A stretch of DNA of 30,308 nucleotides, from assembly GCA_002269645.1 (NCBI GenBank), contig NIVC01000537.1, positions 1 through 30,308 of the forward strand. The letters run 5' to 3'. The translations under genes were made by a program, and so were the position numbers. Positions 87 to 28,804 of this stretch are shown one piece after another; positions within the stretch are counted from its first letter, which is position 1, and each line of letters begins with the position of its first letter. Origin of the DNA: Macrostomum lignano. Lineage: Eukaryota. A model generated the notes under the pieces. That model saw only the letters and a list, made by a program, of their open reading frames with translations, made no database searches and was not told the origin of the DNA.

Positions 87-157
87 AGTGATTGGCACAG
101 AGCAGATGCAAGCACAAGCAGTCAATATCCAAAGCAACTGAGACGAACCCCACCCAG

Positions 158-2759
158 GTAATGGTAGTCCCGGAGGGTGTCTACCCTCGGTCGCAGCAAG
201 CCCTGACAGTAGGCGCGGTCAGCACGTGGAACTGCGGCTTACCTACGACTCCACTGTGAGATTCCCGAAGCCGCCAGCGAGAGACTGCCAGATGGAGAAG
301 GACAGACAAGCCGTGGTGTACGCTATGCAGTCGTGGAATTCAACTGCCAGCAGTCAAGTGTGAGCGCTTCTTGGGGTGTCTGAGAGTGATGAAAATTGAG
401 GATGAGTGCGATGCTGGAGAAGGAGATTATAATTCTGATATTGGGATTATAATTATAGGATGAGATCAGAATAGGGCGAGATTATATTGGGATCCGGTTA
501 GAACATGGTGGATTAGAACGGGTCAGATGGGAATGGATGAGATTAGATTTGGATGTGATGAGAATGGTTTGAGATTAGATTGGGATGAGATTAGATTGAA
601 TTGAGGTTAGATTGGGATGAGATTAGATTGTGATGAGATTAGATTGGGATTAGGTTAAACTGGGATGACACCATATTCGGATAGGATTAGAATGGGGTGA
701 ATTAGAAGGCAATGAGATTAGAGTCGATCAAGTGAGACCATAGAGTTAATTGTGATTAGAATGGCGTGAGACTGTATTGATTATTTATATTGATAGTATA
801 AGACCAGGTGGTTTGGCGAAGTTTCGAGGCAATTAGGGATTAATAAGATTCATATGTAATCTTGACAGTAGCACTCTTTGCAATAACTTTGCATTAAAAA
901 TAATTAAAATCGGCAGGGAACTCGTAAACATGACAGAAATCCGTGAGGCCACAACTTGGACTGAAAAGATTGACGCGCTGGCAAATATTCTCGCTGATCT
1001 GAACAGAAAGCGAGAAATTAAAGAGTGAGGCATCTTTTAATTTTCTGTTTGTGAAATTGTATTAAAATATGCTTTTGCCCTACTAACAGTAGAAAAACTA
1101 AGAATAATCTCATAATTTCTATTTATTGTTCTAAAAACGCTTTTCACCTACTTTGAGTAGCTTCATGTACATATAAAGTATCAATAATACCCGAAAAACA
1201 GAGGTCGAATTAACAATCGGCTAATCTTCAAATCCGGCACCCAAACCGACTGCATCGATGCTTATAAGGCGCGTCGTTTCTTAGAAAACTGCGGCTGCCT
1301 TCCGACGGCTCTCCTGCCGTTGCCAGCCAGCCTCATCGGTAGTTTCTGCTTCAATCAGAGTGGCACTGGACACAATTTCACCTGGACCGAGCGTTGCCTA
1401 GCAACCGAAACAGCCAAGCTGCTGCAATACGAACATGAGGCCAGATCGAAATGCCCGCCTCCGTGCGAGACGTTAAGCTACTCCATCAGCCAGGCGGGCA
1501 GCCCGTGGCCCGGCCTAGAGAGAGAGTCGGCTGTAGGCTGGATGAAGCTGCTGGCAATGTCGCTCGGCTATCCCAATAATCCCACCGGCTCGAGGGCCAT
1601 CGCCGGCATATTCGCTACTTACTTGCGCGCCGAGCGACTATCCAGACAGCCAGCTGAAAAGAGGGATCTCAACCAGATGCTGGAGTTTCAGCAAAAACTT
1701 CTGTCGCTAGAGAGGCAATTCGCTCGCATTACTGTGAGAATTCATAGATTTTTTCGTTTATTCTGCTGGTTCGTTTCTAAGCCAATTAGATAGAGAAAAT
1801 CAATCGGCTGTTCTCAGCCAATCAGCGATGGCTATGAGATAGAGAGAATCAATTGACCATTCTCAGCCAATCAGCGACAACTATGAGATGGAGAGAATCA
1901 ATTGACCATTCTCAGTCAATTAGCGACGACTATAAGATAGATATAATCAATTGGCGTTCTCAGCCAATCAGATGACGACTTCAGCCAATCAGCGACGACT
2001 TTGAGATAGAGAGAATTAAGTTCTCAGCCAATCAGTGACGACTATGAAATAGAGATAATCAATTGGCGTTCTCAGCCAATCAGCGACATTTGAGCGATAG
2101 AGAGAATCAATCGGCCGTTCTCAGCCAATCAAAGATGACTATGAGATAGAGATATCAAATGACCATTCTCAGCCAATCAGCGACGACTATGAGATAGAGA
2201 GAATCAATCGGCTGTTCTTGGCCAATCAGCGGCGAGTAGGAAATAGATAGTAGAGGGAAATAATTTGCAGTCTCAGCCAATGAAAACTGATATTTCTGTA
2301 ACCAATCAAGTGCAAAGAAGCAGAAAGGGATATTTATGCATAACAAACATTAAATATCGATTTTTTTCGAACAGGTAACAGCGGCTCGAGAGTTCGGAGA
2401 AGAAATAGTTGAAGAGCCTGGCTACACTATCAAGGATCTGATGGCCGACATGGGAGGTGCGTATCCTTCCTTGGCCTCTGTCCACTCGTATCCAACCAAT
2501 ATTATCGATTATTATTGATTTTTCAGGAGCGCTCGGTCTGTGGTCGGGGGTGTCAGTGCTAACCGCGTGCGAACTCATCGAACTGATTGCCTACCTGGCC
2601 GGGGCAGCCGCCAACTCCCGTCTGTTGCGAGGCGCTCAATCGAAAGTGCAGGCCCAACAGGAGGCTGCTTCATCCGCTTCCGTTGCCGCCGCCGCGACCA
2701 CCGACGAGTCCGAGATGATCGACAGTGCAGTCAGCCTTCAAAAGACTATTGACTTATAA
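158..2759 (+). CDS. DEG/ENaC (ASIC-like) sodium channel subunit, 3' part; exons ~158-359, 917-1024, 1202-1733, 2375-2456, 2527-2759
   Basis: Spliced translation gives VMVVPEGVYP..GQHVELRL..RFPKPPARDC, DC..ENCGCLP..FC..RC..KCPPPCETLSYSIS..WP, and TM2 region DLMADMGGALGLWSGVSVLTACELIE (family GGxLGLxxGxS motif). All four introns are GT-AG with matching phases. Stop TAA at 2757-2759. The start of the first exon is uncertain, and a 1-nt frameshift lies near 215-219. Confidence 0.9.
430..770. repeat. Degenerate GATTAGATTGGGATGA-type array in ENaC intron 360-916
   Basis: Recurrent gattagatt/gggatga motifs. Confidence 0.65.
1795..2285. repeat. ~48-bp minisatellite (TTCTCAGCCAATCAGCGACGACTATGAGATAGAGAGAATCAAT..) in ENaC intron 1734-2374
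   Basis: About 10 diverged copies visible. Confidence 0.85.
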
Positions 2760-3115: not shown

Positions 3116-3638
3116 TTTGTCTAATAAAGTTCAAATTCAGACACTGCATCTGAGAAAAGAAAATAATATTGCAGTGGAATGTACTCGAGTATTGAAGCGC
3201 CAAAGAAGATATTGAAGCGCCATAAATGGATGTTAAAGTGCCATGGACGACAGGTAAAATTGAATAAAACCTGGCAAATTGAAATCAATCCAGTTAAATT
3301 AAAGTTGACAGGTTCACTGTCGCGTCGTGCCTATATATGCACCGCAGCGTGACAGGATAACTTCAGAGTTGTCCACTATAAGAAGAAAAAAGGCCAGCGC
3401 TCATATTTTGTTTCATTATTTGCCTAATCCATTTAAATTCAAAGCGAAAATTGGGAAGAAAAGGCGTCACTGAAATTGAATTAAATTACCCGTCACTTTA
3501 GACTGCATGCAGGTTCGTTGAAATCTGTATAAATTCGCAACTCTTTACAGACCCACACAAAGCATCAAAGTTGTTCTTTTATCGAGGTCAAAAGGCAGAG
3601 GCTTTTATCCTACATCATTACAGGAACTAAGAATTGCA

Positions 3639-5601
3639 ATGGTGCATCTGCGAAGGTAAGATTTTGCGGAGTAGCCTGGATTTTTTATTGGTGGCAGAGA
3701 CGCATCTTTGAGGCGCCAAACCTGCTGTGTAGGGAGCGCCAAACTTGCTGTGTAGGGGGGCGCCAAACTTGCTGTGTAGGGAGCGCCAAACTTGCTGTGT
3801 AGGGAGTATCAAACCTGCTGTGTAGGGAGCGCCAAACTTGCTGTGTAGGGGGGCGCCAAACTTGCTGTGTAGGGGGGCGCCAAACTTGCTGTGTAGAGAG
3901 CGCCAAACTTGCTGTGTAGGGAGCGCCAAACCTGCTGTGTAGGGGGCGCCAAACTTGCTGTGTGGGGGGGAGCGCCAAACTTGCTGTGTGGGGGGGGAGC
4001 GCCAAATCTGCTGTGTAGGGAGCGCCAAACCTGCTGTGTAGGGGGCGCCAAACTTGCTGTGTGGGGGGGGGAGCGCCAAACTTGCTGTGTGGAGGAGAGC
4101 GCCAAACCTGCTGTGTGGGGAGCGCCAAACTTGCTGTGTGGGGGGGGAGCGCCAAACTTGCTGTGTGGGGAGCGCCAAACCTGCTGTGTGGGGAGCGCCA
4201 AATCTGCTGTGTAGGGAGCGCCAAACTTGCTGTGTGGGGGGGAGCGCCAAACCTGCTGTGTAGCCAAACTTGCTGTGTAGGGGGGCGCCAAACACTTTAT
4301 TATCATAACATATTATGAAACATTTTGCAGGACTCTACTCGATATTAAAAAGCCGACTGTGCTGTTATTACTGAGCACGGTTTTGGTTGCTAACTTGAGC
4401 AGCTGTCAAGCCATGGAGATTTCTTCTAATTCTGGTTTCCCGTCGAGCCGAACAGATTTTCAACGCTGGCTGACTGGTAACCTAGAAGCGGCTGGGGATT
4501 CTGTTCGGGGATTTTAGTCATTGGAAACTGGGGGATTAGGGCGTTAGTAACTGGGGATTAGGGGATTAGTCACTAGGACTAGTGACTGGGGATTTGGGTA
4601 TTAGGCACTAAGATTAGGGGATTAGAGACTGAGATTAGGGGATTAGTCACTAAGATTAGGGGATTGGTGACTGGGGATTAGGGGATTAGTCACTAGGATT
4701 AAGGGATTAGTGACTGGGGATTATGGGATTAATCACTAAGATTAGGGGATTAGTCACTAAGATTAGGGGATTAGTCACTAAGATTAGGGGATTAGTGAAC
4801 TGGGGATTAGGGGATTAGTAACTAAGACTAAGGGATTAGTGAACTGGGGATTAGGGGATTAGTAACTAAGATTAAGGGATTAGTGACTGGGGATTAGGAG
4901 ATTAGTCACTAAGATTAGGAGATTAGTGAACTGGGGATTAGGGGATTAGTAACTAAGATTTGTGACTGGGGATTTTTGGATTAGTCACTAAGATTAGGGG
5001 ATTAGAGACTGGGGATTAGGGGATTAGTCACTAAGATTAGGGGATTAGTGACTGAGGATAAGAGGATTAGTCACTAAGATTAGGGGATTAGTCACTAAGA
5101 TTAAGGGATTTGTGACTGGGGATTTTTGGATTTGTCACTAAGGTTAGGGATTAGTGACTGGGGATTAGAGGATTAGTCACTAAGATTAGGGGATTGGTGT
5201 CTGTTATTAGAAGATTGAACAGAGATGGTTATTATAAACGAAGACATCAGTTCCTGTAATTAATTATTGACGATATACTATTAGTACTTATTAATGTACA
5301 AACAGCTGAAGCGCCTGGATCACCGATGCCATGGAAAATGAAGCGACGCCATGAAAAGCTGCACCGCAGGACAGCACCAATGTCCAGCTCGACTTTAACA
5401 GCCCCATTGCAACCTCGTCTGCGCCTGCGCCTGTCGCATCTGGTGTACTTTCCATGCGCTTACGGAGGCCTGCCCTATCCCGTTGGCTGCGGCAAGTCCG
5501 GCCTGGGGCCGCGGGTGTTCGTGTCTAGGAAGCGGCGTCAGCTGGTGTGCGTGTGCCTGTGCCCCGCCAGCGCCGCTCTGCCTAATTGCAGCGTCGTTTA
5601 A
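3639..5601 (+). CDS. Putative secreted Cys-rich precursor, 152 aa; coding exons 3639-3655, 4331-4476, 5306-5601
   Basis: ATG GTG CAT CTG CGA AG|gtaaga ... ttttgcag|G ACT CTA (phase 2), and ACT G|gtaacc ... caaacag|CT GAA (phase 1). Joined length is 459 nt = 153 codons with no internal stop. N-terminal hydrophobic stretch (PTVLLLLSTVLVANLSSCQA), KRR/RR/RKRR sites and 6 C-terminal Cys. Confidence 0.75.
3712..4292. repeat. ~23-bp minisatellite GCGCCAAACTTGCTGTGT(A/G)GGGA with variable G-run, in intron 3656-4330
   Basis: About 25 copies visible. Confidence 0.95.
4485..5195. repeat. GGGGATTAG-based minisatellite (~21-bp unit GGGGATTAGTCACTAAGATTA) in intron 4477-5305
   Basis: Directly visible. 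Confidence 0.9.
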
Positions 5602-7019
5602 ATTGACAACCAATTTGAAATAATTATAGCATTGCAGCGATTATTAAAATTAAAGCGGTAAAATGTACGCACGTACAATGTACATGGCAAATATCTAAAT
5701 ATATATATGGACTTTGACCAAAACCGCGAGAATCAGAAGGCCAAACAACTACAGTACGACTATTAAAGTACGACCATTAAAATTTGAAGGACTTTTGATT
5801 GGAGCTTTAATCAAAACATCTTAAATCGTGCTAACTTTGCTATTGCCTGCTATGAGTAGGGTATTAGTGAACTTATATAAAATAATTACAATTAGATTCA
5901 AAACTTTGGTAGTTATTAGTGGCTTTGCCTTCGACTAATTTATAGTAATTCATACGCTTTTTAAAGCAATATAAATGTATCACCCTTCACGATTGGCCCC
6001 AGGGACATCTTTTGCGGAGTAAGCGTATAGTTGCATTACATTATAACAAAACACACACGTTTTTCAAACGTACTGGCCGTGTCGTTAAATAAACATTAGT
6101 TGAAATGCGAAGTCCAGTTAGAAAATAAATATGGTTCAGTCTTTACTGCATAGAGTAGAGAGTAGATTTACGACGTTAGTTGCACTGTTGAATAACTACA
6201 GTTTTTAATTAAACCGAAAGCATTGTTTATTTAGGCACCATTTTCACAAGTAAGTAAATGAGAATTTTCATCAGCAGACTCGCTCGCATAGGAAATGAAC
6301 TGCTATTTGTATGATTAACGAGTCTGTAACTGTCTAACTGTTAAAAATGAAACGCGGGTTAACAGGTGGTGCGAAATACAAATGCAAGTTGGGTAGGGTA
6401 GGGAAAATAAACACTCGAGCTTCGAGCGCTAAAAAGTGTCACTCATAAGTAGAGATTCTGCATTTTCTGACCTGCTGAATAGACCCAACAACCAGACACA
6501 GATAACAAATATTTGGTTTTCTCAAAATTGTGTGGCGATAAAAACTAATTACTAATGTACTTTTTAATGTGCGCACTTAATCTATTATTGTATTTATTTT
6601 ATTTGGCCGCCGCGGCCCAGGCCTCCGGTAAAGGAAGAAACGTTTTGGGGTGGAGAGGGGGCTTCTCGGTATGTACATGCCTCACTGTACATTGAATTGG
6701 GAGTGGGGGGAATCGGGGTTGGTTGGGTAAAAGAGAGAGGAACGAGGGGGATAGAGTTAGGTAAGACTTTTAGCTCGCAAACCCTAAACTAACCCTTATA
6801 TATATCAGCACATGGACCCATTCCAGACAGATTCTGTCAATGTTTTGCATCAGTCTATCTAACCAGCAAACTTGTTAACTAAATAAATCCTGCTTAAGGT
6901 TATATACACTGAATATCGTGAAAGCTCTTGCACGTTTTCTATTGCAACCAAGCATCAAACAACGAATTACACTAGCTAATATATTAATTACCAAACGGTG
7001 AAACAAGCAGCAACAAAGC

Positions 7020-10000
7020 ATGGAAATTTCGACGCACCAAGAGCCTTTTATTTATGTCAATGACAAACGATACGAGAGTAAGTATAACCACACTATGCGA
7101 TTCTTGGGATTGCTTTTTTTACCAATAAATCGTTAGTTTTACAATCCACGGTCATGTAGTCACTCGCGATTGCGACCCCGAGATGAGTCTGAACGACTTT
7201 CTTCGCGACACGCTCAACTTGAAGGGCACCAAAGTGATGTGCCGCGAGGCCGGCTGCGGTTGTTGCACAGTGTGCGCCGTTTATAAACATCCAGCTACTG
7301 GCGAGATCGAGTCTAAACCGGTTAATTCGGTGAGCTAAATTTTTTGTGATTGTTGAATGTTGCCTGTGGACTATATTTGTTAGTTAGGATAGGGGAAGTC
7401 CTTGAATCTGAAGATTGAAGAAACTAGCTGCTTGGCTAGAATCAAGGTTAAAACCTAATAAGGGAGGTTGGACATCCCGAATGATACATCATTCAGCGAA
7501 GAAAAGCACCTGGACTACTAAAATAGAAGCCCTTGAACTACTGGAATAAAAGTCCCTGGCCTGAACTATGGGAATAGAAGTCCTTGTTGAACTACTGGAA
7601 TAGAAGTCCTTGAACTACTCGAATAGAAGTCCTTGAACTACTGGAATAGAAGTCCTTGTTGAACTACTGGAATAGAAGTCCTTGAACTACTGGAATAGAA
7701 GTCCTTGTTGAACTACTGGAATAGAAGTCCTTGAACTACTGGAATAGAAGTCCTTGTTGAACTACTGGAATAGAAGTCCTTGAATTACTCGAATAGAAGT
7801 CCTTGAACTACTGGAATAGAAGTCCTTGAACTACTGGAATGGAAGTCCTTGTTGAACTACTGGAATAGAAGTCCCTGAACTAATGGATTAGAAGCCCCTG
7901 AACTGCTGGATTAGAAGCCCCTGAACTACTGGAATAGAAGTCCTTGAACTACTCGAATAGAAGTCCTTGAACTACTGGAATAGAAGTCCTTGAACTACTC
8001 GAATAGAAGTCCTTGAACTACTCGAATAGAAGTCCTTGAACTACTGGAATAGAAGTCCTTGAACTACTCGAATAGAAGTCCTTGAACTACTCGAATAGAA
8101 GTCCTTGAACTACTCGAATAGAAGTCCTTGAACTACTCGAATAGAAGTCCTTTAACTACTCGAATAGAAGTCCTTGAACTACTCGAATAGAAGTCCTTGA
8201 ACTACTCGAATAGAAATCCTTGAACTACTGGATTAGAAGTCCTTTAACTACTCGAATAGAAGTCCTTGAACTACTGGAATAGAAGTCCTTGAACTACTGG
8301 AATAGAAGTCCTTGAACTACTCGAATAGAAGTCCTTGAACTACTCGAATAGAAGTCCTTGAACTACTCGAATAGAAGTCCTTGAACTACTCGAATAGAAG
8401 TCCTTTAACTACTCGAATAGAAGTCCTTGAACTACTCGAATAGAAGTCCTTGAACTACTCGAATAGAAGTCCTTGAACTACTGGAATGGAAGTCCTTGTT
8501 GAACTACTGGAATAGAAGTCCCTGAACTAATGGATTAGAAGCCCCTGAACTGCTGGATTAGAAGCCCCTGAACTACTGGAATAGAAGTCCTTGAACTACT
8601 CGAATAGAAGTCCTTGAACTACTGGAATAGAAGTCCTTGAACTACTCGAATAGAAGTCCTTGAACTACTCGAATAGAAGTCCTTGAACTACTGGAATAGA
8701 AGTCCTTGAACTACTCGAATAGAAGTCCTTGAACTACTCGAATAGAAGTCCTTGAACTACTCGAATAGAAGTCCTTGAACTACTCGAATAGAAGTCCTTT
8801 AACTACTCGAATAGAAGTCCTTGAACTACTCGAATAGAAGTCCTTGAACTACTCGAATAGAAATCCTTGAACTACTGGATTAGAAGTCCTTTAACTACTT
8901 GAATAGAAGTCCTTGAACTACTGGAATAGAAGTCCTTGTTGAACTACTGGAATAGAAGTCCTTGAACTACTGGAATAGAAGTCATTGAACTACTCGAATA
9001 GAAATCCTTAAACTACTGGAATAGAAGTCCTTGAATTACTCGAATAGAAGTCCTTGAACTACTGGAATAGAAGTCCTTGAATTACTCGAATAGGAGTCCT
9101 TGAACTACTGGAATAGAAGTCCTTGTTGAACTACTCGAATAGAACTTAGAAGTCCTTGAACTACTCGAATAGAAGTCCTTGAACTACCGGATTACCGGAA
9201 TAGAAATCCCTGAACTACCGGAATAGAAGTCCTTAGCTATGGTAATGTTAGATTTTCAATATCACATGTGCCTCAGATGTAACATTGACCCCTTACCCCA
9301 TTACAGTGTGTGACACCCTTGTACTCCGCCGCCGGCTGGCACATTGTCACCATTGAAGGCATCGGCGGCCGCAGCCAGTCCGCGGGCTACCACCCAATTC
9401 AGGCCAGCCTAGCCGACGGATTCGGCAGTCAGTGCGGCTACTGTTCGCCCGGCTTCGTCATGTCGGCCTACAGCCAGCTGAGAGACAATCCGAAGGCTAC
9501 TAAATTAGAGGTTGAGCACTTTTTCGACGGCAATATTTGCCGCTGCACCGGCTATAGGCCGATATTGGACTCGATGAAGAGCTTCGCTTGCGATGCCGGC
9601 AAAGCTGGAGGCTGTTTGGAGGTTGAGGCGAGTACGATTATTGGTACTTTGATTGTCTATATGAGATTGTATTGTGGCATTTGGAGGTAATATTCCAATA
9701 AGACTTCAAATCCCAGATTCAAGATCCCAACCGGGATCTCATCTTAACTCCATGGTCCCAGATCCCAACCTCTTGATCCCAGATCCCAACCTCTTGATCC
9801 CAGATCCCAACCTCTTGATCCCAGATCCCAACCTCTTGATCCCAGATCCCGACTTCTTGATACCAGATCCCAACCTCTTGATCCCAGATCCCAACCTCTT
9901 GATCCCAGATCCCAACCTCTTGATCCCAGATCCCAACCTCTTGATACCAGATCCCACCCCGTGATCTCCAGATCCCAATCCCTTGATTCCAGATCCCAAC

Positions 10001-13000
10001 CTCTTGATCCCAGATCCCAACCTCTTGATCCCAGATCCCAACCTCTTGATCCCAGATCCCAACCTCTTGATCCCAGATCCCAACCTCTTGATACCAGATC
10101 CCACCCCGTGATCCCCAGATCCCAATCCCTTGATCCCAGATCCCGATCCCTTGATCCCAGATCCCAATCTCTTGATCCCAGATCCCAACCTCTTGATCCC
10201 AGATCTTAACTCCTTGATCCCAGTTCCCAGATCCTAGATTAGCAGCGCTAAAAATTCAACCCTAAAATTTGAGTTCAGATCCCGGATAAATGATTATGAA
10301 ATTCCTAAAAATTCACTCCCAGCTTTATCTAAATAATTTCGAAAGCATTTATGCTACTTAAAGTAGTTAACTTATTTTTAAAACAGAATAATTTTTATTT
10401 AATAAGCAATATTGATTGAAATGATAGCTATTGAAAATGCAGGATCTAGAGCGCGGCTGCTGCCGAAGCCAAGTTGGCAAAGTGCCAACCTCCGGCGTGG
10501 CGGCCATCGCTCGCGGTTGGAAAGGCCAGAAGTTCTACAATCCCGGCACACTGAAGGAGCTGCTGACTCTGCTTGGCAGACTGCGGAATGATAATTATCG
10601 ATTGGTGTTTGGCAACACGTCTAGCGGCGTGTTTAAAGAGGACGCCATTGCTGATCATTACGTGAATATTAGGAATGTTCCCGAACTGTATAAGATTGAG
10701 GTGAGCTTCGGTTTGTTGCTATTCATTTTTTAGTATCTTTCTCACAATATTTTTTTCGTTTTGCTAGTTTTTTTGAAAATTTTCGTATGTTTTTTTCTAA
10801 ATTTCCTCATTCCCAGAATCCCAGAAACTCCCCATTTCCATAAATTTCTTCATTCATTCCCAGAAATTTCCTCTCCCAGAAATTCCCCATTCCCATAAAT
10901 TTCCCATTTCCATAAATTTCTTCATTCATTCCCACGAATTTCCCATTCCCAGAAATTTCCTCTCCCAGAAATTCCCCATTTCCAGAAATTTCCTCCCAGA
11001 AATTCCCCATTCCCATAAATTTCCTCTCCAAGAAACTCCCCATTCCAATGAATTCCCCATTCCCAAAAATTTCCTCTCCCAGAAATTCCCCATTCCCATA
11101 AATTTCCTCTCCAAGAAACTCCCCATTCCAATGAATTCCCCATTCCCAAAAATTTCCTCTCCCCATTCCAATGAATTCCCCATTCCCATTTCCTCTCCCA
11201 GAAAATTCCCCATTGCCAGAAATTCCCCATTCCCAGAATTTCCCTATTCTTAAAAATTCCCCATTTCCAAAACTTTTCCCAATCCCAAAAAATCTCCCAT
11301 TCCAAAATGCTTCCCCGTTTTTAAATAATTTCCTCAGTTCCCAAAAAATTATCCATTTCCAAAAAATTCCTCATTGCTAAGAATTTCCCAATTCCCGAAA
11401 ATTTCCTCAACTCCAAAAATTCCCATTTTGGGAAACTTTATCATTCAGGAAAACTTATTTCCGAATATTTTCAATCGTACAAGTTATGAATATTATCAAG
11501 AAAATTGCTGCCTTGTTTATTTTCTCCACCAAACCACAGGAGACCGAGGCCAGCCTAGAGATCGGTTCCAATCTCACCCTGCACGACCTGCTAGTGCTAT
11601 TCGCTCGCGTTGCCAATGACAACAAACAAGCCGGCAGGGCCTACCTGGGCCAGTTCTCCCGCCACCTGCAGCAGGTGGCCAATCAGGCAGTCCGTAGAAA
11701 CGGTTGCTGGGCGGGCAATCTCATGCTCAAGTTGGCCCATCCCGAATTCCCCTCCGACCTGTTCGTGCTGATGGCCGCTTCCGGAGCCATTGTGAAAGTC
11801 GCCGACTCAATTGACGGTGGAGCGGCTGTTCAAGAGTACACGATGACCGACTTTCTTCGGCAGGACATGCGCGGCCGGGTCGTCACCTCGGCGCTCCTGC
11901 CGCTCTCTGGCGGCGTCGGGCAGCGGTTCGGCTCGTTCAAGATTACTCCCAGGGCTCTGGTGGGTTGGCCATTGTTGTTTGATTGCCTTGTTCGCTATGC
12001 ACTCATTTCTGAAGATTCTAAATTCTAAAGATCCCCATTCTAAATTCTAAAGATCCCCATTCTAAATTCTAAAGATCCCCATTCTAAAGATTCCCATTCC
12101 AATGATGCCCATTCTAAAGTCTAAAGATCCCCATTCTAAAGATCCCCATTCTAAAGATTCCCATTCCAATGATGCCCATTCTAAAGATCCCCATTCTAAA
12201 GTCTAAAGATCCCCATTCTAAAGATCCCCATTCTAAAGATTCCCATTCCAATGATGCCCATTCTAAAGTCTAAAGATCCCCATTCTAAAGATCCCCATTC
12301 TAAAGATTCCCATTCCAATGATGCCCATTCTAAAGATCCCCATTCTAAAGATTCCCATTCCAATGATCCCCATTCTAAAGTCTAAAGATCCCCATTCTAA
12401 AGATCCCCATTCTAAAGATTCCCATTCCAATGATGCCCATTCTAAAGATCCCCATTCTAAAGATCCCATTCCAATGATCCCCATTCTAAAGATCCCCATT
12501 CTAAAGATCCCCATTCCAATGATCCCCATTCTAAAGATCCCCATTCTAAAGATCCCCATTCCAATGATCCCCATTCTAAAGATCCCCATTCTAAAGATCC
12601 CCATTCCAATGATCCCCATTCTAAAGATCCCCATTCTAAAGATCCCCATTCTAAAGACCCCCATTCTAAAGATCCTCATTATAAAGATCCCCAATTCAAA
12701 GATCTCCATTTTAACGATCCCCATTCCAAAGATCCCCATTTCATAGATCCCCATTTCAAAGATCCCCATTCCAAAGATCATGATTCTAAAGATCCCCATT
12801 TCAAAGATCCCCATTCCTAAGATCCTCATTCTAAAGATCCACACACCAAATATTTAAAATCTCAGAACGCCCACGCCTACCTCAACGCCGCGTTCAACGT
12901 CTCCGTGGACTCAGCCAACGGCTACACAGTCACTGATCGGCCCAGAATTGTCTACGGCGGCGTGTGTGACAAGTTTGTAAGCGCAGATTAAAAAAACACT

Positions 13001-16000
13001 GATTTTCATGGCTTATGACTAGGAATTTATTTAGTAATGTTAATTTTTCTTTCAGAATCACGCTGTTAAAACTGAGAACTATTTGCAGAATAAGAGCCTT
13101 ATAGATCAGGAGACTGTTAACGGTGAGATTGTCATTCAGGTTGTTAAAAAATCATATTTTATTTTCACACTCAAAACGTCCCATCATTCACTCTTTCAAA
13201 TGCTTATCCACGCTCTTACTCACTCACTCACTCGCTCGTTCACTCACTCACTCGCTCACACTCACTCACTCACTCACTCACTCACTCACTCACTCACTTA
13301 CTCACTCACTCACTCACTCACTCGCTCACTCACTCACTCACTCACTCACTCACTTACTCACTCACTCACTCACTCGCTCACTCACTCTACAATCACTCAC
13401 TCACTCGCTCGCTCACTCACTCACTCACTCGCTCACTCACTCATTCACTCACTCACTCACTTACTCACTCACTCACTCGCTCACTCACTCACTCACTTAC
13501 TCACTCACTCACTCGCTCACTCACTCACTCACTCACTCATTCACTCACTCACTCACTTACTCACTCACTCACTCGCTCACTCACTCACTCACTTACTCAC
13601 TCACTCACTCGCTCACTCACTCACTCACTCACTCATTCACTCACTCACTCATTCACTCACTCACTCACTTACTCACTCACTCACTTACTCACTCACTCAC
13701 TCACTCACTCACTCACTCACTCACTCACTCGCTCGCTCACTCACTCACTCACTCATCCGCCCCACGCCCGCAGGCGCCATCAAGGTGCTGGAATCGGAGC
13801 TGAACCCGGCCGAAGAGGCCACCTGGTCCAGTCCGCAGCACCGCCGCTCGCTAGCCAGCAACCTGCTGTACAAGTTCATCCTCGGCGTCGCCTCCGCCGC
13901 CCTGCCAGCCGCGGACAGCAGCGGAGCTCAAGTTTTCGTGCGTCGAGTCCAGTCAGCTGAGCAGGACTTCGAGCAGGAGCCGAGCGAGTTGCCGTCGGCG
14001 CCGCTAGGGCGAGCCTGCCCAAGCCCGAGGCCCGAGGACAGACTGCTGGAGAGGCTCAGTACGTCAACGATGCTCCTAGTAGGAGCAATGAGCTGTTTGG
14101 CGCGTTCGTACTCGCCCAGGAGGCTCCGGCTAAGCTGAAGGGATTCGGCACCGAGGAGGCTGAGGTGAGCGGCGTTGCGGTAGGGGTGGTAGCATGTGAA
14201 ATTTGACACTTGATAGATGTCTTGAAATCCTGAGAATCCCAAAAATTGTTGATATATGAGTACGCTATGCCACAAAAAACCTCAAAATAAAGGATAAAAG
14301 ATCAAAGGGTAGCATCCTGCAGTGAAAGTGGAACCTTGGGGTAGATGTCTCTATTGGAGGGATAGTGGGCACTGAACACCCTGGGGTAGAGGTCTCTAGA
14401 GGAGGGATAGCGGGCACTAACCAGCCCTGGGGTAGAGGTCTCTAGATGAGGGATAGCGGGCACTGAACACCCTGGGGTAGAGGTCTCTAGATGAGGGATA
14501 GCGGGCACTGAACACCCTGGGGTAGAGGTCTCTAGATGAGGGATAGCGGGCACTGAACACCCTGGGGTAGAGGTCTCTAGATGAGGGATAGCGGGCACTG
14601 AACACCCTGGGGTAGAGGTCTCTAGATGAGGGATAGCGGGCACTGAACACCCTGGGGTAGAGGTCTCTAGATGAGGGATAGCGGGCACTGAACACCCTAG
14701 GGTAGAGGTCTCTAGATGAGGGATAGCGGGCACTGAACACCCTGGGGTAGAGGTCTCTAGATGAGGGATAGCGGGCACTGAACACCCTGGGGTAGAGGTC
14801 TCTAGATGAGGGATAGCGGGCACTGAACACCCTAGGGTAGAGGTCTCTAGATGAGGGATAGCGGGCACTGAACACCCTGGGGTAGAGTTCTCTATTGGAG
14901 GGATAGCGGGCACTGAACACCCTGGGGTAGAGTTCTCTATTGGAGGGATAGCGGGCACTGAACACCCTGGGGTAGAGGTCTCTAGAGTGGGATAACGGGC
15001 ACTGGGTTAGAGGTCTCTAAGAGTGGGATAACGGGCGCAGAGTCACAGACGAGTTTGGGTTAACGGCCGCACCGTAATGCTCTGACTCAAATGATCAACT
15101 TTCAGCAAGTGCCAGGCTACGACCGATTGATCACGGCTAAGGATCTGGAAGGTCGTTACGACAATAATTACGTTTCGGCTCTGATTCCGCCCCAGTTTGC
15201 GTGAGTCGTAATATAGGCACGCACTAAAATGCCTAAAAGTACATTCTTAATCTGTCATCATTAAGAGTCTCTCAGTAATCATTGTGAGAGTCTCTCCATC
15301 GTCATCATTATGAGAGTCTCTCCTTCATCGTTGTGAGAGTCTCCATCATCATTGCGAGAGTCTCTCCTTCATCATCTTCAGTCTCCTGCATCATCGTGAG
15401 AGTCTCCTGCATCATAGTCTTAAGTCTCCTGCACCATTGTGAGTCTCTCCTTCATCATTGTGAGAGTCTCCTGCATCATTGTGAGAGAGTCTCACTGCAT
15501 CATTGTGAGAGTCTCCTGCATCATTGTGAGAGAGTCTCCTGCATCATCGTGAGAGTCTCCTGCATCATTGTGAGAGTCTCCTGCATCATTTTGAGAGTCT
15601 CCTGCATCATTGTGAGAGAGTCCCTGCATCATTGTGAGAGAGTCCCTGCATCATTGTGAGAGAGTCTCCTGCATCATTGTGAGAGTCTCCTGCATCATTG
15701 TGAGAGTCTCCTGCATCATTGTGAGAGTCTCCTGCATCATCGTGAGAGTCTCCTGCATCATTGTGAGAGTCTCCTGCATCATTGTGAGAGTCTCCTGCAT
15801 CATTGTGAGAGAGTCTCCTGCATCATTTTGAGAGTCTCCTGCATCATCGTGAGAGTCTCCTGCATCATTGTGAGAGAGTCTCCTGCATCATCGTGAGAGT
15901 CTCCTGAATCACCGTGAGAGTCTCTCCTCCATCAGTGCGCCCATTTACACAGTCTAAACTCTATATAATTGCACTGCAGACAAACTGAGGAAATCTTGGT

Positions 16001-24165: not shown

Positions 24166-24959
24166 GTCTTCCCTACAGTATTGCAAACCGCGTATTTAAC
24201 AATAAACATTAAAAAGCTTTAATTGTCAAACTTACAATCAGAGTTTTTAATTACCAAAATCTTACATGATCGCATTTTTTGAAGCTAGGAATTCGAAAAC
24301 TAGATACTATATTATTTATATTAACTTCTGCCTATTTAAATAACGGCCTAAAAGATAAAAATTTTGAGCAGAGACTTACGAGTAATTAATGACGCCAATA
24401 CAAATTGATGTAATGCGTTTTACATCGTTATTCGTTACTAATTCGTTAGTAGTCATTGTGCTGTCTTGACCGGGTGCCCTTGAATTTAGTAACGCAATGG
24501 TGCAGCTTAAGGATATCCCATTTAAATTACTATAATATATAATGTTACACTATACACCTATTATTTACGAGTATATGGGTGATTTCAATATTACTATATG
24601 CATCAAATTAAGAATTTTCGCCGATCGGGAGGCGAATCGCAAGTGTAGATGTTTTATTCTGACAATGGTAATAATACAAGCTGTACGTGCAGAAACACAC
24701 AAACCCGTACACATATTGGTGTTACAATAGGAAGCAAGCAATTGAAGTAAGGGTTGTGATGATTAAAAGTAAAGTCAAAAGCAATATTTAGCATGGGCTC
24801 AATGCTGTTGCTATATATAGAATTTTATTTACTTCATTTTTTTACAAAATTTTCTATTGTGGGTTCACTATGTAAGAGTGAAGCTGCAGAACAATAGAAA
24901 ATTGTATTTGAGTACAAATCTGAAGTTGAGAAGCAGCCTGAAATGAAGACCTCCGCGTC

Positions 24960-25930
24960 GTTGCGGTAGCCGCGAGCCACCAGGCGGAGTTCTGCAGGCG
25001 AGCACGCGGAGGATGGTCGGAATGACCATAGCAGAGAACTCCGTCCTCGACAATTAGAGCATTCCGGGCCGCTTTGAACGGTCTCTCAGCTGGGGAGCTG
25101 CTCGACCATATTTGTTGGTGACGACTCGCTTTGTGACATCCATCAGCAGCCTCTCCCTCTGGGTTTCGGCCTTGAGCTCCTGCCATGGGATTACAGCCTC
25201 TGCTGTCCGGTGGATAACGCTGTCGAGCTGCTGCTCTGCACCCTGGTTCTCGAAGCTGTCACCATTAAAGTCTAGCCGTTACAGCGCATCGTCATGCGGG
25301 ATTGACTCGCCCTTCGTGTAGACGATATGGTAGTCGAAAGTCATTAGTTTTATGGCCCACTGAAGCAGCCTGGCGTTTGCGACTTTCGGCATTTGGCGTC
25401 TCGGAGCCAAAGCTGAACTCCAGCGGGCGGTGATCGGTTCTTAGAGTAAATCAAGATCCCAGCAGGAACAAGGATAACTAAAGTAGTCTTTGAGCATGAA
25501 TTACTTGGCACGCTTCAGGACCCAGACGACTTGCGAGTGCCTCTCTTGCTATGTTTGAGTAGCGCGCCCGATCGATGGTGCTCAGTCGCCTGCTGAAATA
25601 CATTATTGGGTGACCATCTTGTGACGGAATCTGACGAGCGTCGTTTCCTTGCGCTTGTTGTACGGCTTGATGGAGAATGTCCTTGATCAGCGAGAATGTT
25701 GCTTGCGAAGCAGGACCCCCGTTGAACTCAGCTGCTCGGGCGCCCAGCTGATTGAGCGGCTCGACGATATCAAAGTAGCTCCTGATGAACCGCTCAAATA
25801 ATTTCGCGAGTCCTAGGAAAGATTCTAACTGCTTCGTGTCCTTGAGTGGTTTTACCGAGCAGATTTTCACCACCAGGTCCGGGTCCGGCGTGATTCCGGC
25901 GGCGCTAATCTTGTAGCCAAGGAACGAAAG
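24960..25930 (-). mobile_element. Decayed Ty3/gypsy LTR-retrotransposon pol fragment (RT C-terminus/connection, RNase H, start of integrase)
   Basis: Minus-strand translation: SFLGYKISAAGITPDPD..KQLESFLGLA..RFI..PLNQL..FSLIK; GHPIMYFSRRL..YSNIAREALA; LRTDHRPL..ARLLQWAIKLMTFDYHIVYTKGESIPHDDAL*RL; PFKAARNALIVEDGVL..WW. Contains frameshifts, stops and deletions. No paired LTRs identified. Confidence 0.88.
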
Positions 25931-25934
25931 GGGG

Positions 25935-26369
25935 TGTCAACTTAAGGCTCTAGAATGGAACCCAAAGAAAGGCTCCAGACCAAACCGACTGGAATCGATA
26001 ACTGGTCGGACCAGGTGACTAGAATCGCCGAGACATCCCATCCGGGTCCCTTTCCTTGGGGTCCCAGGGGATAAAGGGGGTAAAATGGGGATCTCTTGTC
26101 AACTTAAGGCTCTAGAATGGAACCCAAAGAAAGGCTCCAGACCAAACCGACTGGAATCGATAACTGGTCGGACCAGGTGACTAGAATCGCCGAGACATCC
26201 CATCCGGGTCCCTTTCCTTGGGGTCCCAGGGGATAAAGGGGGTAAAATGGGGATCTCTTGTCAACTTAAGGCTCTAGAATGGAACCTAAAGAAAGGCTCC
26301 AGACCAAACCGACTGGAATCGATAACTGGTCGGACCAGGTGACTAGAATCGCCGAGACATCCCATCCGG
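25935..26369. repeat. 162-bp tandem repeat, ~2.7 near-identical copies
   Basis: TGTCAACTTAAGGCTCTAG starts at 25935, 26097 and 26259. Confidence 0.95.
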
Positions 26370-26407
26370 TCTCTTCCTTTGGGTCGTTACGACAGTTGCT
26401 AGCTGCA

Positions 26408-26530
26408 CAGTTGGTGTTAGCTCATGGGATGTGCTTTGGTGCCGTAAAAGTAGCGTAGAGACCGCCTAGAGTTAACGGTGCGGTTGAAAACTTCTGCAAA
26501 GAGATGCTGAAGATACGATTATCCGGAACC
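26408..26530 (+). pseudogene. Possible retroelement integrase-core fragment
   Basis: Plus-strand translation ..GAVKVA*RPRVNGAVENFCKEMLK resembles the gypsy integrase (Y/H)PxSNGxVERFxxxLK motif; short and contains a stop. Confidence 0.4.
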
Positions 26531-26552
26531 TGAAGATACGATTATCCGGAAC
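26507..26552. repeat. Perfect 23-bp tandem duplication CTGAAGATACGATTATCCGGAAC x2
   Basis: 26507-26529 is identical to 26530-26552. Confidence 0.95.
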
Positions 26553-26578
26553 TCCTATGGGAAGCTCCTCCGTGCTAG

Positions 26579-27235
26579 TCAGGCAACTACCTCACGTACG
26601 AGTGTAAATTCGCTTAGGCAATGACGCTGCAGCTGCAACTCTGGCAGAATGCACTGTAGCAACTCGTTCATACAGTGTTGCTGTCTTGGTGCACTGCTGC
26701 GGATAGCTTCGACAAGTTGATCTACGCTTGCTGGTCCAGTCGCCATAGACGTCATCAGGTTGGTCATTGCAGTATTCACTGCCCCACCTCTGACCGGCTG
26801 AAAGAGCTGGACTTTGCTGCTGATGCAGTGAAGCAGTGCAACAACAATTGCGTTGCACTGCTGACCATGGTTTTGAAGATCAAAGAGTCTTGAAGACTGA
26901 GGCTTGGATCGTGAGCTGCTGCTGGCTGACTGAAACTCCTCTTGCTGGCCGCTAGACTGTTGCTCAGTAGGCTTTCGCTGCTGTGGCAAAGCATTTTCTC
27001 TGGCATAAAGAATGGCAACAAGGCCGCGTAGAAGAGCGGAATCAACAAAGCGAAGGCTAACACCAGACCTTCGATAGCTATCTTGGTGGTAAGCGTAGCA
27101 GCCCAGGAGCTTGAGCACTGCCATTACACGACTTCCAGCTTTTGCAGACGAGTAGCAGCCATGAAAAAGTTGCAATCCTGGATCTCTAAAACCAAAGCGA
27201 TTTTCCGCTGCTGTGTCACACACTCTGAGAATCAC
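26579..27235 (-). other. Unassigned 218-aa ORF, Ser/Gln-rich; possibly degenerate gag-side sequence of the retroelement
   Basis: Non-repetitive open frame upstream of the pol fragment on the same strand; no motif recognised. Confidence 0.2.
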
Positions 27236-28804
27236 GCGGTAGGATTCCGAATTGTGGCGCTAGAAAACGACAGCTAGAAAAATCCAAGACGGATGCCACC
27301 AGTAGTAATTAAAAATTACACAGAGAGCCGTTTTTTCCATTACGAATCAATGGGTAAGTAAGGTACCGAACCAACCGCTAGTGCTTTCTACAGAAATTGC
27401 AACTATTCTATCCACATTTCCATTCACAAAGAACGAAAGAAAAGATCTTTTTCATCAACCAACAACCTCTCAACAGAAACACGATCTCTATCCGATGTAT
27501 AGGCTAGGCAGGATAGCTGCGTTAGAAGAATCGAGGCAAGCAAATAAGTGTCGCAAGCCCGAGTTCCTTCCTAGACAATTTCATGCGAACGCTTACCACA
27601 CACATCGAAGAGAGGGGCACGACTATAGCTGCGAGGAAAACGCAGACAAAAGCTTGAAAACCGAGAGCGAAAAGCCGAACGTTCACCCCCCCCCCTCGCG
27701 AGAGTATGTACATCAAACCCAAATTTGAGGGGTGGGGTGTTGGGAGACGTGGCCTACGTTAGAAATCGGATTCCAACTGGACTAGATTGAAGGTGTGCCA
27801 CCTTAGCAGGTCGAAGTGCATTAATTGCTCAATATTTCGAAATTATTTTTGATTTCTTTGAGTACAGTTTTGCAACACATAAAACCCTAAAAATGTTAAA
27901 CTATTGTAAACTACTTAGATGCTACGTATTTTAGTTACATATGTCCTATGTGACTAATTAATTATAATTTACCATTCATTAATTTTTTAATCACAAAGTT
28001 CTATTAAATAGACTCAAAAAATCAAACTGAGACACATGAATTAACATCATATACTAAGGTCCAAGAAATAATACTCATAATAAATATCTTGGACATTTGG
28101 ACTTACGAAAAATAATCTTGCAATTAACAACGAAATTAGTTAAAAAAAATTTTCGCCGCTCCGATTCTGTTCACTGTAATTTGAAATGAGATTTTCCTAG
28201 AAATTCAGCATTTCAAATGTACAGTTTAACGCCCACAGGTACGTGAAACCACCGGATGCGACTTTGCAGTGAAATGCTTTGCCATTTGATACAAGTTACC
28301 CAACATTAGGTAGCCTGATCATTTAGCTAAATCCATAATTAGGCACAGCAGCTTTCAAAACTCCGAAAAAACGAATTAATCAATAAATATGTAAACTATT
28401 ATATGAGAAAAATACTGCCGTGTCTAAAACAAAAAGCGTCGAGCATTTAACTAACCTCACACAGTGCAATGAGAATTAAAAACAAAGATATTTTTATGGA
28501 AACTTTACACCATTTTTTACACTGTAAATTTTTTTACACTGTGAAAGGTTAATCAATGCTACTCACACTTTTAGGGACTTTCACTGCACATTTTGTGGGC
28601 GGTGCTGCGCGCAATAATAGTTTCGCAAATTTGTATCAAAACCGCCAAACGGCAAACATGCGCGCAGTACCCACTCAATAGAGTGTTCGTTTTTGGAAAG
28701 AATATTTAAATTGTAACTCGAGCAGACATTAGCTTTTTAAGTGCTTTGCTTATGAGAATTCAGCAGCCACTGCAACGCAAATTACGCAATTTATCGTAAA
28801 TAAT

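Follow-up and report, generated by a model that had tools for sequence, protein, structure and literature searches.

The DNA analysed here (the window) is a stretch of 30,308 nucleotides from contig NIVC01000537.1 of the Macrostomum lignano genome assembly GCA_002269645.1. Positions 3639-5601 of its forward strand contain a three-exon gene with a signal-peptide-like N-terminus and a C-terminal six-cysteine domain. Judged from its sequence and that of its relatives, this gene is an unannotated, probably functional paralogue of a small M. lignano family of short secreted precursors, of which Mlig026996 and A0A1I8HGG9 are representatives. The gene had first been proposed from the DNA letters as an orphan, protease-processed secreted precursor without a recognisable family. 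Its exon structure and cysteines were confirmed by our analysis, whereas its orphan status was not.

When the join was recomputed, the three exons gave 459 nucleotides encoding 152 amino acids, identical to the protein of the original prediction. The splice sites are canonical at both ends of each intron, and the reading frame is uninterrupted over the three exons. The list of open reading frames shows only 5326-5601 (91 amino acids) of this gene, so that the last exon alone is visible there, as had been stated. Both introns are filled with minisatellites. A 23-24 bp unit in about 24 copies (3713-4293) makes up about 86% of intron 1, and a 43 bp unit (21+22) in about 14.6 copies (4576-5195, repeat span 4519-5231) makes up about 86% of intron 2. 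The 43-bp unit embeds the telomere-like hexamer TTAGGG, which occurs 18 times in 4477-5305. The 5' untranslated region probably starts near 3560, and the AG at 3622-3623 could serve as an alternative (trans-)splice acceptor for exon 1.

The family was found through the third exon. In an exhaustive HMMER search with the exon-3 peptide, covering a library of 1.84 billion proteins, the last 50 residues matched three M. lignano clusters (E 3.3e-13, 1.3e-12, and 5e-12) with 66-70% identity. The deposited M. lignano relatives are "hypothetical protein BOX15_Mlig026996g1/g2" (P0121/P0126; PAA47331.1, PAA56703.1, and PAA49465.1), the "EGF-like domain-containing protein" A0A1I8HUJ2 (P0122; 857 amino acids), and three entries named "Secreted protein" (P0123/P0127/P0128; A0A1I8HGG9, A0A1I8HQH8, and A0A1I8G223) of 117-121 amino acids. 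Due to these matches to deposited paralogues, the gene is not an orphan and belongs to a small uncharacterised family. A fourth cluster from the same search (P0125, E 2.8e-4) comes from the Logan assembly of SRR18682679, and a profile search added P0129 from the ENA assembly ERZ26052287. The fifth HMMER match, a repetitive MGPRVFVSRK protein, was regarded as spurious. A0A1I8HUJ2 is a chimeric model in which a long retroelement-like, low-complexity reading frame is fused to a 95-residue precursor at the C-terminus. It is the sole family member bearing an EGF-like name.

The relatives in SRR18682679 and ERZ26052287 (L003 336-914; L004 10001-10243) belong to AT-rich eukaryotes and form their own subgroup, with 61% mutual identity and the motif FPCNG...GGIGP[KR]...FC[AV]CLCPxxWxGPxC. 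Therefore, the family is not confined to Macrostomum. The C-terminus of one of these two relatives is GGRR, which could signal amidation and cleavage. Within M. lignano, the sequences point to at least three paralogue groups, and at least two besides the window copy are already deposited. In Pfam, neither the 152-residue product nor any of the relatives gave a significant match. Literature searches by locus tag, sequence motifs, and the two run and assembly accessions found no papers. A word-indexed search with the full 152-residue product returned no matches, which is a false negative, as it missed even the paralogues of 66-70% identity. Searches of databases that include the UniProt (ML2-based) and NCBI (Mlig_3_7) M. 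lignano protein sets turned up no protein identical or nearly identical to this product. The window copy is therefore unannotated. The claim of an undescribed gene thus applies to this copy and not to the family, which is already deposited.

The gene structure of an annotated paralogue supports the three-exon model. At the two Mlig026996 loci in GCA_002269645.1 (L001 and L002), a 95-residue precursor (MGKPNLTT...GPNCGSS) is spliced from three exons. Exon 1 ends with ATGGG/GTAAGC (the slash marks the exon boundary) in phase 2 and has the start codon at its very end, as in the window gene. Exon 2 carries the hydrophobic signal-peptide core and ends with TTGG/GTGAGG in phase 1. Exon 3 starts with (E)KR and carries the entire Cys domain. 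The exon roles and the intron phases (2, then 1) of the window gene are equal to those at L001 and L002, and tblastn comparison to both loci confirms the similarity. Mlig_3_7 was annotated by assembling RNA-seq data with the genome as a guide (Wudarski et al., 2017; PMC5730564), and the paralogue structure is therefore transcript-derived. A further comparison comes from L003, which lies in an animal genome of 37% GC. Its 50-nt hydrophobic exon (SITVWWLVLMFALQIT) has phase 2 at its start and phase 1 at its end, and a 191-nt intron separates it from the domain exon. The second intron and the phase with which exon 2 opens agree with those of the window gene. The flanking signals of the paralogue include a TATAAA at about 9969 of L001, some 30 nt 5' of position 10001, where the gene is annotated to start, a CCAAT box, and an AATAAA about 105 nt past the stop. 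The two Mlig026996 copies (L001 10109-13363 and L002 7914-11516) are 98-99% identical on different contigs, as would fit the duplicated genome of M. lignano. A (CTAT)59 microsatellite lies in intron 2 of Mlig026996, and just 5' of the promoter of this gene is a minisatellite with 32 copies of a 10-bp unit.

The encoded protein resembles a secreted precursor. Exon 2 encodes the hydrophobic core VLLLLSTVLVA, the c-region SSCQA, and the first part of the pro-region. At the N-terminus, a basic n-region is followed by an 11-residue core (residues 16-26), whose Kyte-Doolittle maximum of 2.90 is comparable to that of the paralogues. Signal cleavage is predicted after A33, as originally proposed; SSCQA precedes Met34, and C-Q-A fits the -3/-1 rule. 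The call draws on hydropathy, on the -3/-1 rule, and on alignment with A0A1I8HGG9, a paralogue with GTAQA/MW at the place of SSCQA/M. A hydropathy scan found no later hydrophobic or transmembrane-like stretch in the precursor. The region of Met34 (MEISS, 4407-4425) and the start of the xanthine dehydrogenase (XDH)-like gene downstream (MEIST, 7017-7035) share CATGGA[G/A]ATTTC, probably by coincidence.

The basic processing sites of the original prediction (KRR, RR, and RKRR) fared unevenly. R92 of LQPR is invariant over five sequences (LEKR, LRKR, LEKR, and VASR in the relatives), and LHRR aligns with VHRR of A0A1I8HGG9. KMKRR is unique to the window copy and lies within its specific insertion. 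RKRR lies between the second and third cysteines, in a predicted hairpin turn, where the paralogues have SRNR or SKKG. Because of this position inside the Cys domain and these replacements, RKRR is more likely a conserved basic loop and probably not a cleavage site. The six C-terminal cysteines (C105, C116, C136, C138, C140, and C149) were predicted correctly and are conserved in the relatives. Also invariant in the alignments are F-P-C, three glycines, G-P, C-L-C, a proline, and the pro-region arginine R92. The window copy has the family motif G-x-G-P as well. The window copy departs from its relatives by a Leu for Gly in G-P-N-C, two single-residue insertions in the domain, and a long, partly low-complexity stretch in the pro-region.

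BOX15_Mlig026996g1/g2 is 66% identical to the window copy over the Cys domain and has the same order of predicted signal peptide, short pro-region ending in Arg, and six cysteines (C-x10-C-x17-19-C-x-C-x-C-x8-C), as well as a TATA box upstream. The Mlig026996 precursor is transcript-supported, with 95 amino acids, a clean LEKR site, Gly in GPNC, and a charge of +5, whereas the window copy has 152 amino acids, a long extra pro-region, Leu for Gly, the two one-residue insertions, and a charge of +8. A0A1I8HGG9, A0A1I8HQH8, and A0A1I8G223 show 70% domain identity; their predicted signal peptide ends with ...AQA/M compared with ...CQA/M in the window copy, and their pro-region is shorter.

Whether the window copy is functional was weighed by its coding signal and substitution pattern. 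With a codon table trained on 892 codons from confirmed exons of the window, the predicted frames of exon 2 and exon 3 scored -0.19 and -0.03 bits/codon, in each case the best of the six frames. The known exons of the window and the exons of the paralogue score 0.15-0.39 bits/codon in the true frame (0.19 and 0.16 for the Mlig026996 exons). In a codon alignment with L001, dN (nonsynonymous divergence) was 0.43 and dS (synonymous divergence) 1.37, giving dN/dS 0.32, and identity at codon positions 1/2/3 was 56/77/44%. Such a pattern is expected where purifying selection has maintained the frame through most of its past.

Several points weigh against a functional gene. The window copy is absent from both M. 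lignano gene sets and has no known transcript, whereas the neighbouring XDH-like gene does have its own exact UniProt model. Its codon bias is weaker than that of the transcribed paralogue. It has Leu in place of the Gly of G-P-N-C that all five relatives share, and the low-complexity insertion in the pro-region is specific to this copy. No significant family assignment was obtained from Pfam, the PDB sequence search, two Foldseek searches, or hhalign. Most of these points would also fit a recently silenced or decaying duplicate, in which homology and gene structure are real and expression or a working peptide is gone. The Leu, which also costs the copy the EGF_1 pattern described below, and the insertions in the pro-region and domain could be taken as decay, and redundant copies are common given the large duplicated fractions of the M. 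lignano assembly (PMC5730564). However, the reading frame and splice sites are intact over three exons, the copy has kept the six cysteines and the remaining invariant residues, it has candidate TATA and poly(A) signals, and dN/dS is low. Absence from the annotation is weak evidence, as the word-indexed search missed clear paralogues, and for the XDH-like gene next to it, too, no NCBI (Mlig_3_7) model was among the hits. We thus regard a functional gene as probable, a young pseudogene as unlikely though a serious candidate, and a chance assembly as next to nothing.

The segments might instead belong to a neighbouring gene, either as upstream (5' untranslated or alternative) exons of the XDH-like gene, which begins at 7020, or as 3' exons of the channel gene, which ends at 2759. 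All three genes are on the forward strand with gaps of 0.9-1.4 kb, and M. lignano has polycistronic precursor transcripts (PMC5730564). This is very improbable, as the gene has its own ATG, stop, TATA, and ATTAAA, its homology to stand-alone precursors of 95-121 amino acids covers the whole unit, and the XDH-like model A0A1I8I8H1 starts at its own ATG at 7020. We also asked whether exon 3 might be a 2Fe-2S exon displaced from the XDH-like gene (GCGKSGLGP compared with GCGEGGCGA); this was rejected, since the true first XDH exons at 7020-7329 match A0A1I8I8H1 exactly. Intrinsic signals by themselves are ambiguous on whether a gene is present, as exon 1 gives merely 17 nt, three of the six frames are open for at least 70 amino acids across the GC-rich exon-3 island, and codon scores are weak; nevertheless, a chance stitching of GT/AG sites round a GC-rich open frame is effectively refuted by the exon-3 homology (E about 1e-13) to expressed paralogues, their equal three-exon layout with the same roles and two phases, and the third-position excess of substitutions relative to L001.

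If the gene is functional, we propose the following pathway for its product. Transcription would begin 3' of the TATA box, and the two minisatellite-filled introns (phases 2 and 1) would be spliced out. The 152-residue product would enter the endoplasmic reticulum via its N-terminal signal peptide, which would be cut after about A33, and three disulfides could form from the six C-terminal cysteines. A protease of the furin or prohormone-convertase type may cut past the conserved Arg about 12 residues before the first cysteine (R92, possibly also R76). The resulting peptide of about 60 residues would be strongly cationic and disulfide-rich and would act outside the cell. The safest statement of function is thus a putative secreted, convertase-processed, disulfide-stabilised cationic peptide. 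As in neuropeptide and hormone prepropeptides, the precursor has a predicted signal peptide, a pro-region, one or more putative basic cleavage sites, and a potentially bioactive C-terminal piece. It differs from them in that it has no repeated short peptides or amidation Gly, and its predicted product is a folded domain of about 60 residues. Pfam, HMMER, and profile searches showed no similarity to any named neuropeptide family.

The Cys domain has a partial likeness to EGF. The family shares with EGF the number of six cysteines and the C-x-C-x8-C arrangement of the last three (C-x-C-x5-G-x2-C in the relatives), and CLCPxxxxGPNC resembles Notch EGF repeats. The cysteine spacing of the window copy is C-x10-C-x19-C-x-C-x-C-x8-C (10/19/1/1/8), and that of the relatives is 8-10/17-18/1/1/8. 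EGF and TGF-alpha have 7/4-5/10/1/8, from which the window copy differs in that the third cysteine is 1 residue before the fourth and not about 10. The PROSITE pattern EGF_1 (PS00022), C-x-C-x5-G-x2-C, is matched by all five relatives and not by the window copy (CLCPASAALPNC), because of its Gly-to-Leu change. This match presumably explains the UniProt name of A0A1I8HUJ2.

Profile and structure comparisons gave a similar picture. The Pfam EGF families (PF00008/PF07974) had no match to the window copy, P0121, or P0123, and EGF_2 appeared at E 0.3-0.6 for P0125 and P0129 only. In a PDB profile search, the one segment that aligned to Notch-type EGF repeats was CLCPxxxxGPNC, at E about 2. In hhalign against seven human EGFR-ligand domains, the probability was 24% over 13 columns, and just the CxCx8C tail was aligned. 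AlphaFold (AF2) models of the exon-3 peptide and of the 60-residue domain had mean confidences (pLDDT) of 58 and 69.5, respectively, with a beta-hairpin preceding the CxC. Two Foldseek searches against the PDB with these models found nothing with E <1, which is a weak test at such modest confidence. By its sequence, the domain appears EGF-like in its C-terminal third only, with the third cysteine displaced and the first two thirds unlike EGF, and we do not class it as an EGF domain.

A role as an EGF-type ligand is a legitimate but weak speculation. It is raised because eight EGF receptors but only two EGF ligands were reported in M. lignano, and because soluble EGF ligands without a transmembrane segment occur in planarians (Barberán et al., 2016; PMC4914847). 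The family precursors resemble the latter, being predicted to be secreted without such a segment. EGFR ligands (EGF, TGF-alpha, and neuregulin) end in G-x-R-C and usually have a transmembrane precursor, whereas the family lacks G-x-R-C, ends in G/L-P-N-C, and has no transmembrane segment. That the family consists of divergent soluble EGF-like ligands with a displaced third cysteine, serving some of the receptors in the expanded EGFR repertoire of M. lignano, seems improbable. If it were true, the window copy would add another ligand gene, as yet unannotated. Roles in defence or in reproductive secretion may be equally considered.

The gene adds a missing model to the genome of a model flatworm. 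It suggests that short secreted-peptide genes split by repeat-filled introns can escape both ab initio and RNA-seq-based annotation in M. lignano. The family, whose peptides are predicted to be small, secreted, cationic, and rich in disulfides and have an EGF-like tail, could be one of signalling or defence peptides. Findings of this kind are ordinary in animal genomes, and the gene is useful for annotation without being a surprising object. The features of the gene and its precursor are listed in Table 1.

Table 1. Features of the three-exon gene and its predicted precursor (window positions unless residues are stated).
Feature	Position	Strand	Details
Inverted CCAAT (ATTGG)	3450		motif position, upstream of the candidate TATA box
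TATAAA, candidate TATA box	3528-3533	+	105 nt 5' of ATG; putative promoter motif
Exon 1, coding part	3639-3655	+	ATGGTGCATCTGCGAAG, then GTAAGA donor (AAG/GTAAGA); encodes MVHLR + 2 nt
Intron 1	3656-4330	+	675 nt, phase 2, GT..AG
Exon 2	4331-4476	+	acceptor TTTTGCAG/GAC, donor CTGACTG/GTAACC
Intron 2	4477-5305	+	829 nt, phase 1, GT..AG
Exon 3	5306-5601	+	acceptor AAACAG/CTG; TAA stop at 5599-5601
Basic sites in exon 3	residues 65-69, 73-76, 89-92		KMKRR, LHRR, LQPR, respectively
Predicted mature peptide	5419-5598	+	after putative cleavage at R92: LRLRLSHLVYFPC...PNCSVV, 60 aa, net charge +8
Two ATTAAA hexamers, candidate poly(A) signals	5643-5654	+	42-54 nt past the stop; putative role

The gene sits in 4.3 kb between two forward-strand genes. 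At 1320-2759 (+) are the 3' exons of an amiloride-sensitive sodium channel (ASC, degenerin/ENaC-type), for which the Pfam ASC matches are sub-threshold and positionally consistent (E 0.006 and 1.4e-4). Downstream, the xanthine dehydrogenase/aldehyde oxidase-like gene (+) extends from 7020 to at least about 21.9 kb, and Pfam searches of its reading frames found 2Fe-2S, FAD-binding, and molybdopterin domains. A homology search with the N-terminal exons of this gene found UniRef100_A0A1I8I8H1 (M. lignano, 184 amino acids), which maps with 100% identity to exons 7020-7077, 7160-7329, and 9307-9630 and so marks the window as M. lignano DNA; it is truncated at 184 residues because the model reads into the intron past 9630. 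Nearly every intron of this gene is filled by a different minisatellite of 15-45 bp or a microsatellite, with long spurious reading frames as a result. Examples are a 23-bp unit of 71 copies at 7514-9187 and (ACTC)n at 13218-13755.

A search for duplicates of the gene inside the window found none beyond a marginal match at 6624-6683 (+), where SGKGRNVLGWRGGFSVCTCL aligns with SGAGPRVFRSKKGFLVCVCL (50% over 20 amino acids, E about 0.2) and resembles the hairpin/CxC part of the family domain. Chance may account for this similarity, or a duplicate exon may have decayed here, between the gene and the XDH-like gene. Rfam and tRNA scans of the window found nothing. A GC-rich block at 24850-27240 (-) has minus-strand reading frames, one weak RT_RNaseH_2 match, and a 162-bp tandem repeat of 2.8 copies at 25935-26385, and it is probably a retroelement remnant.

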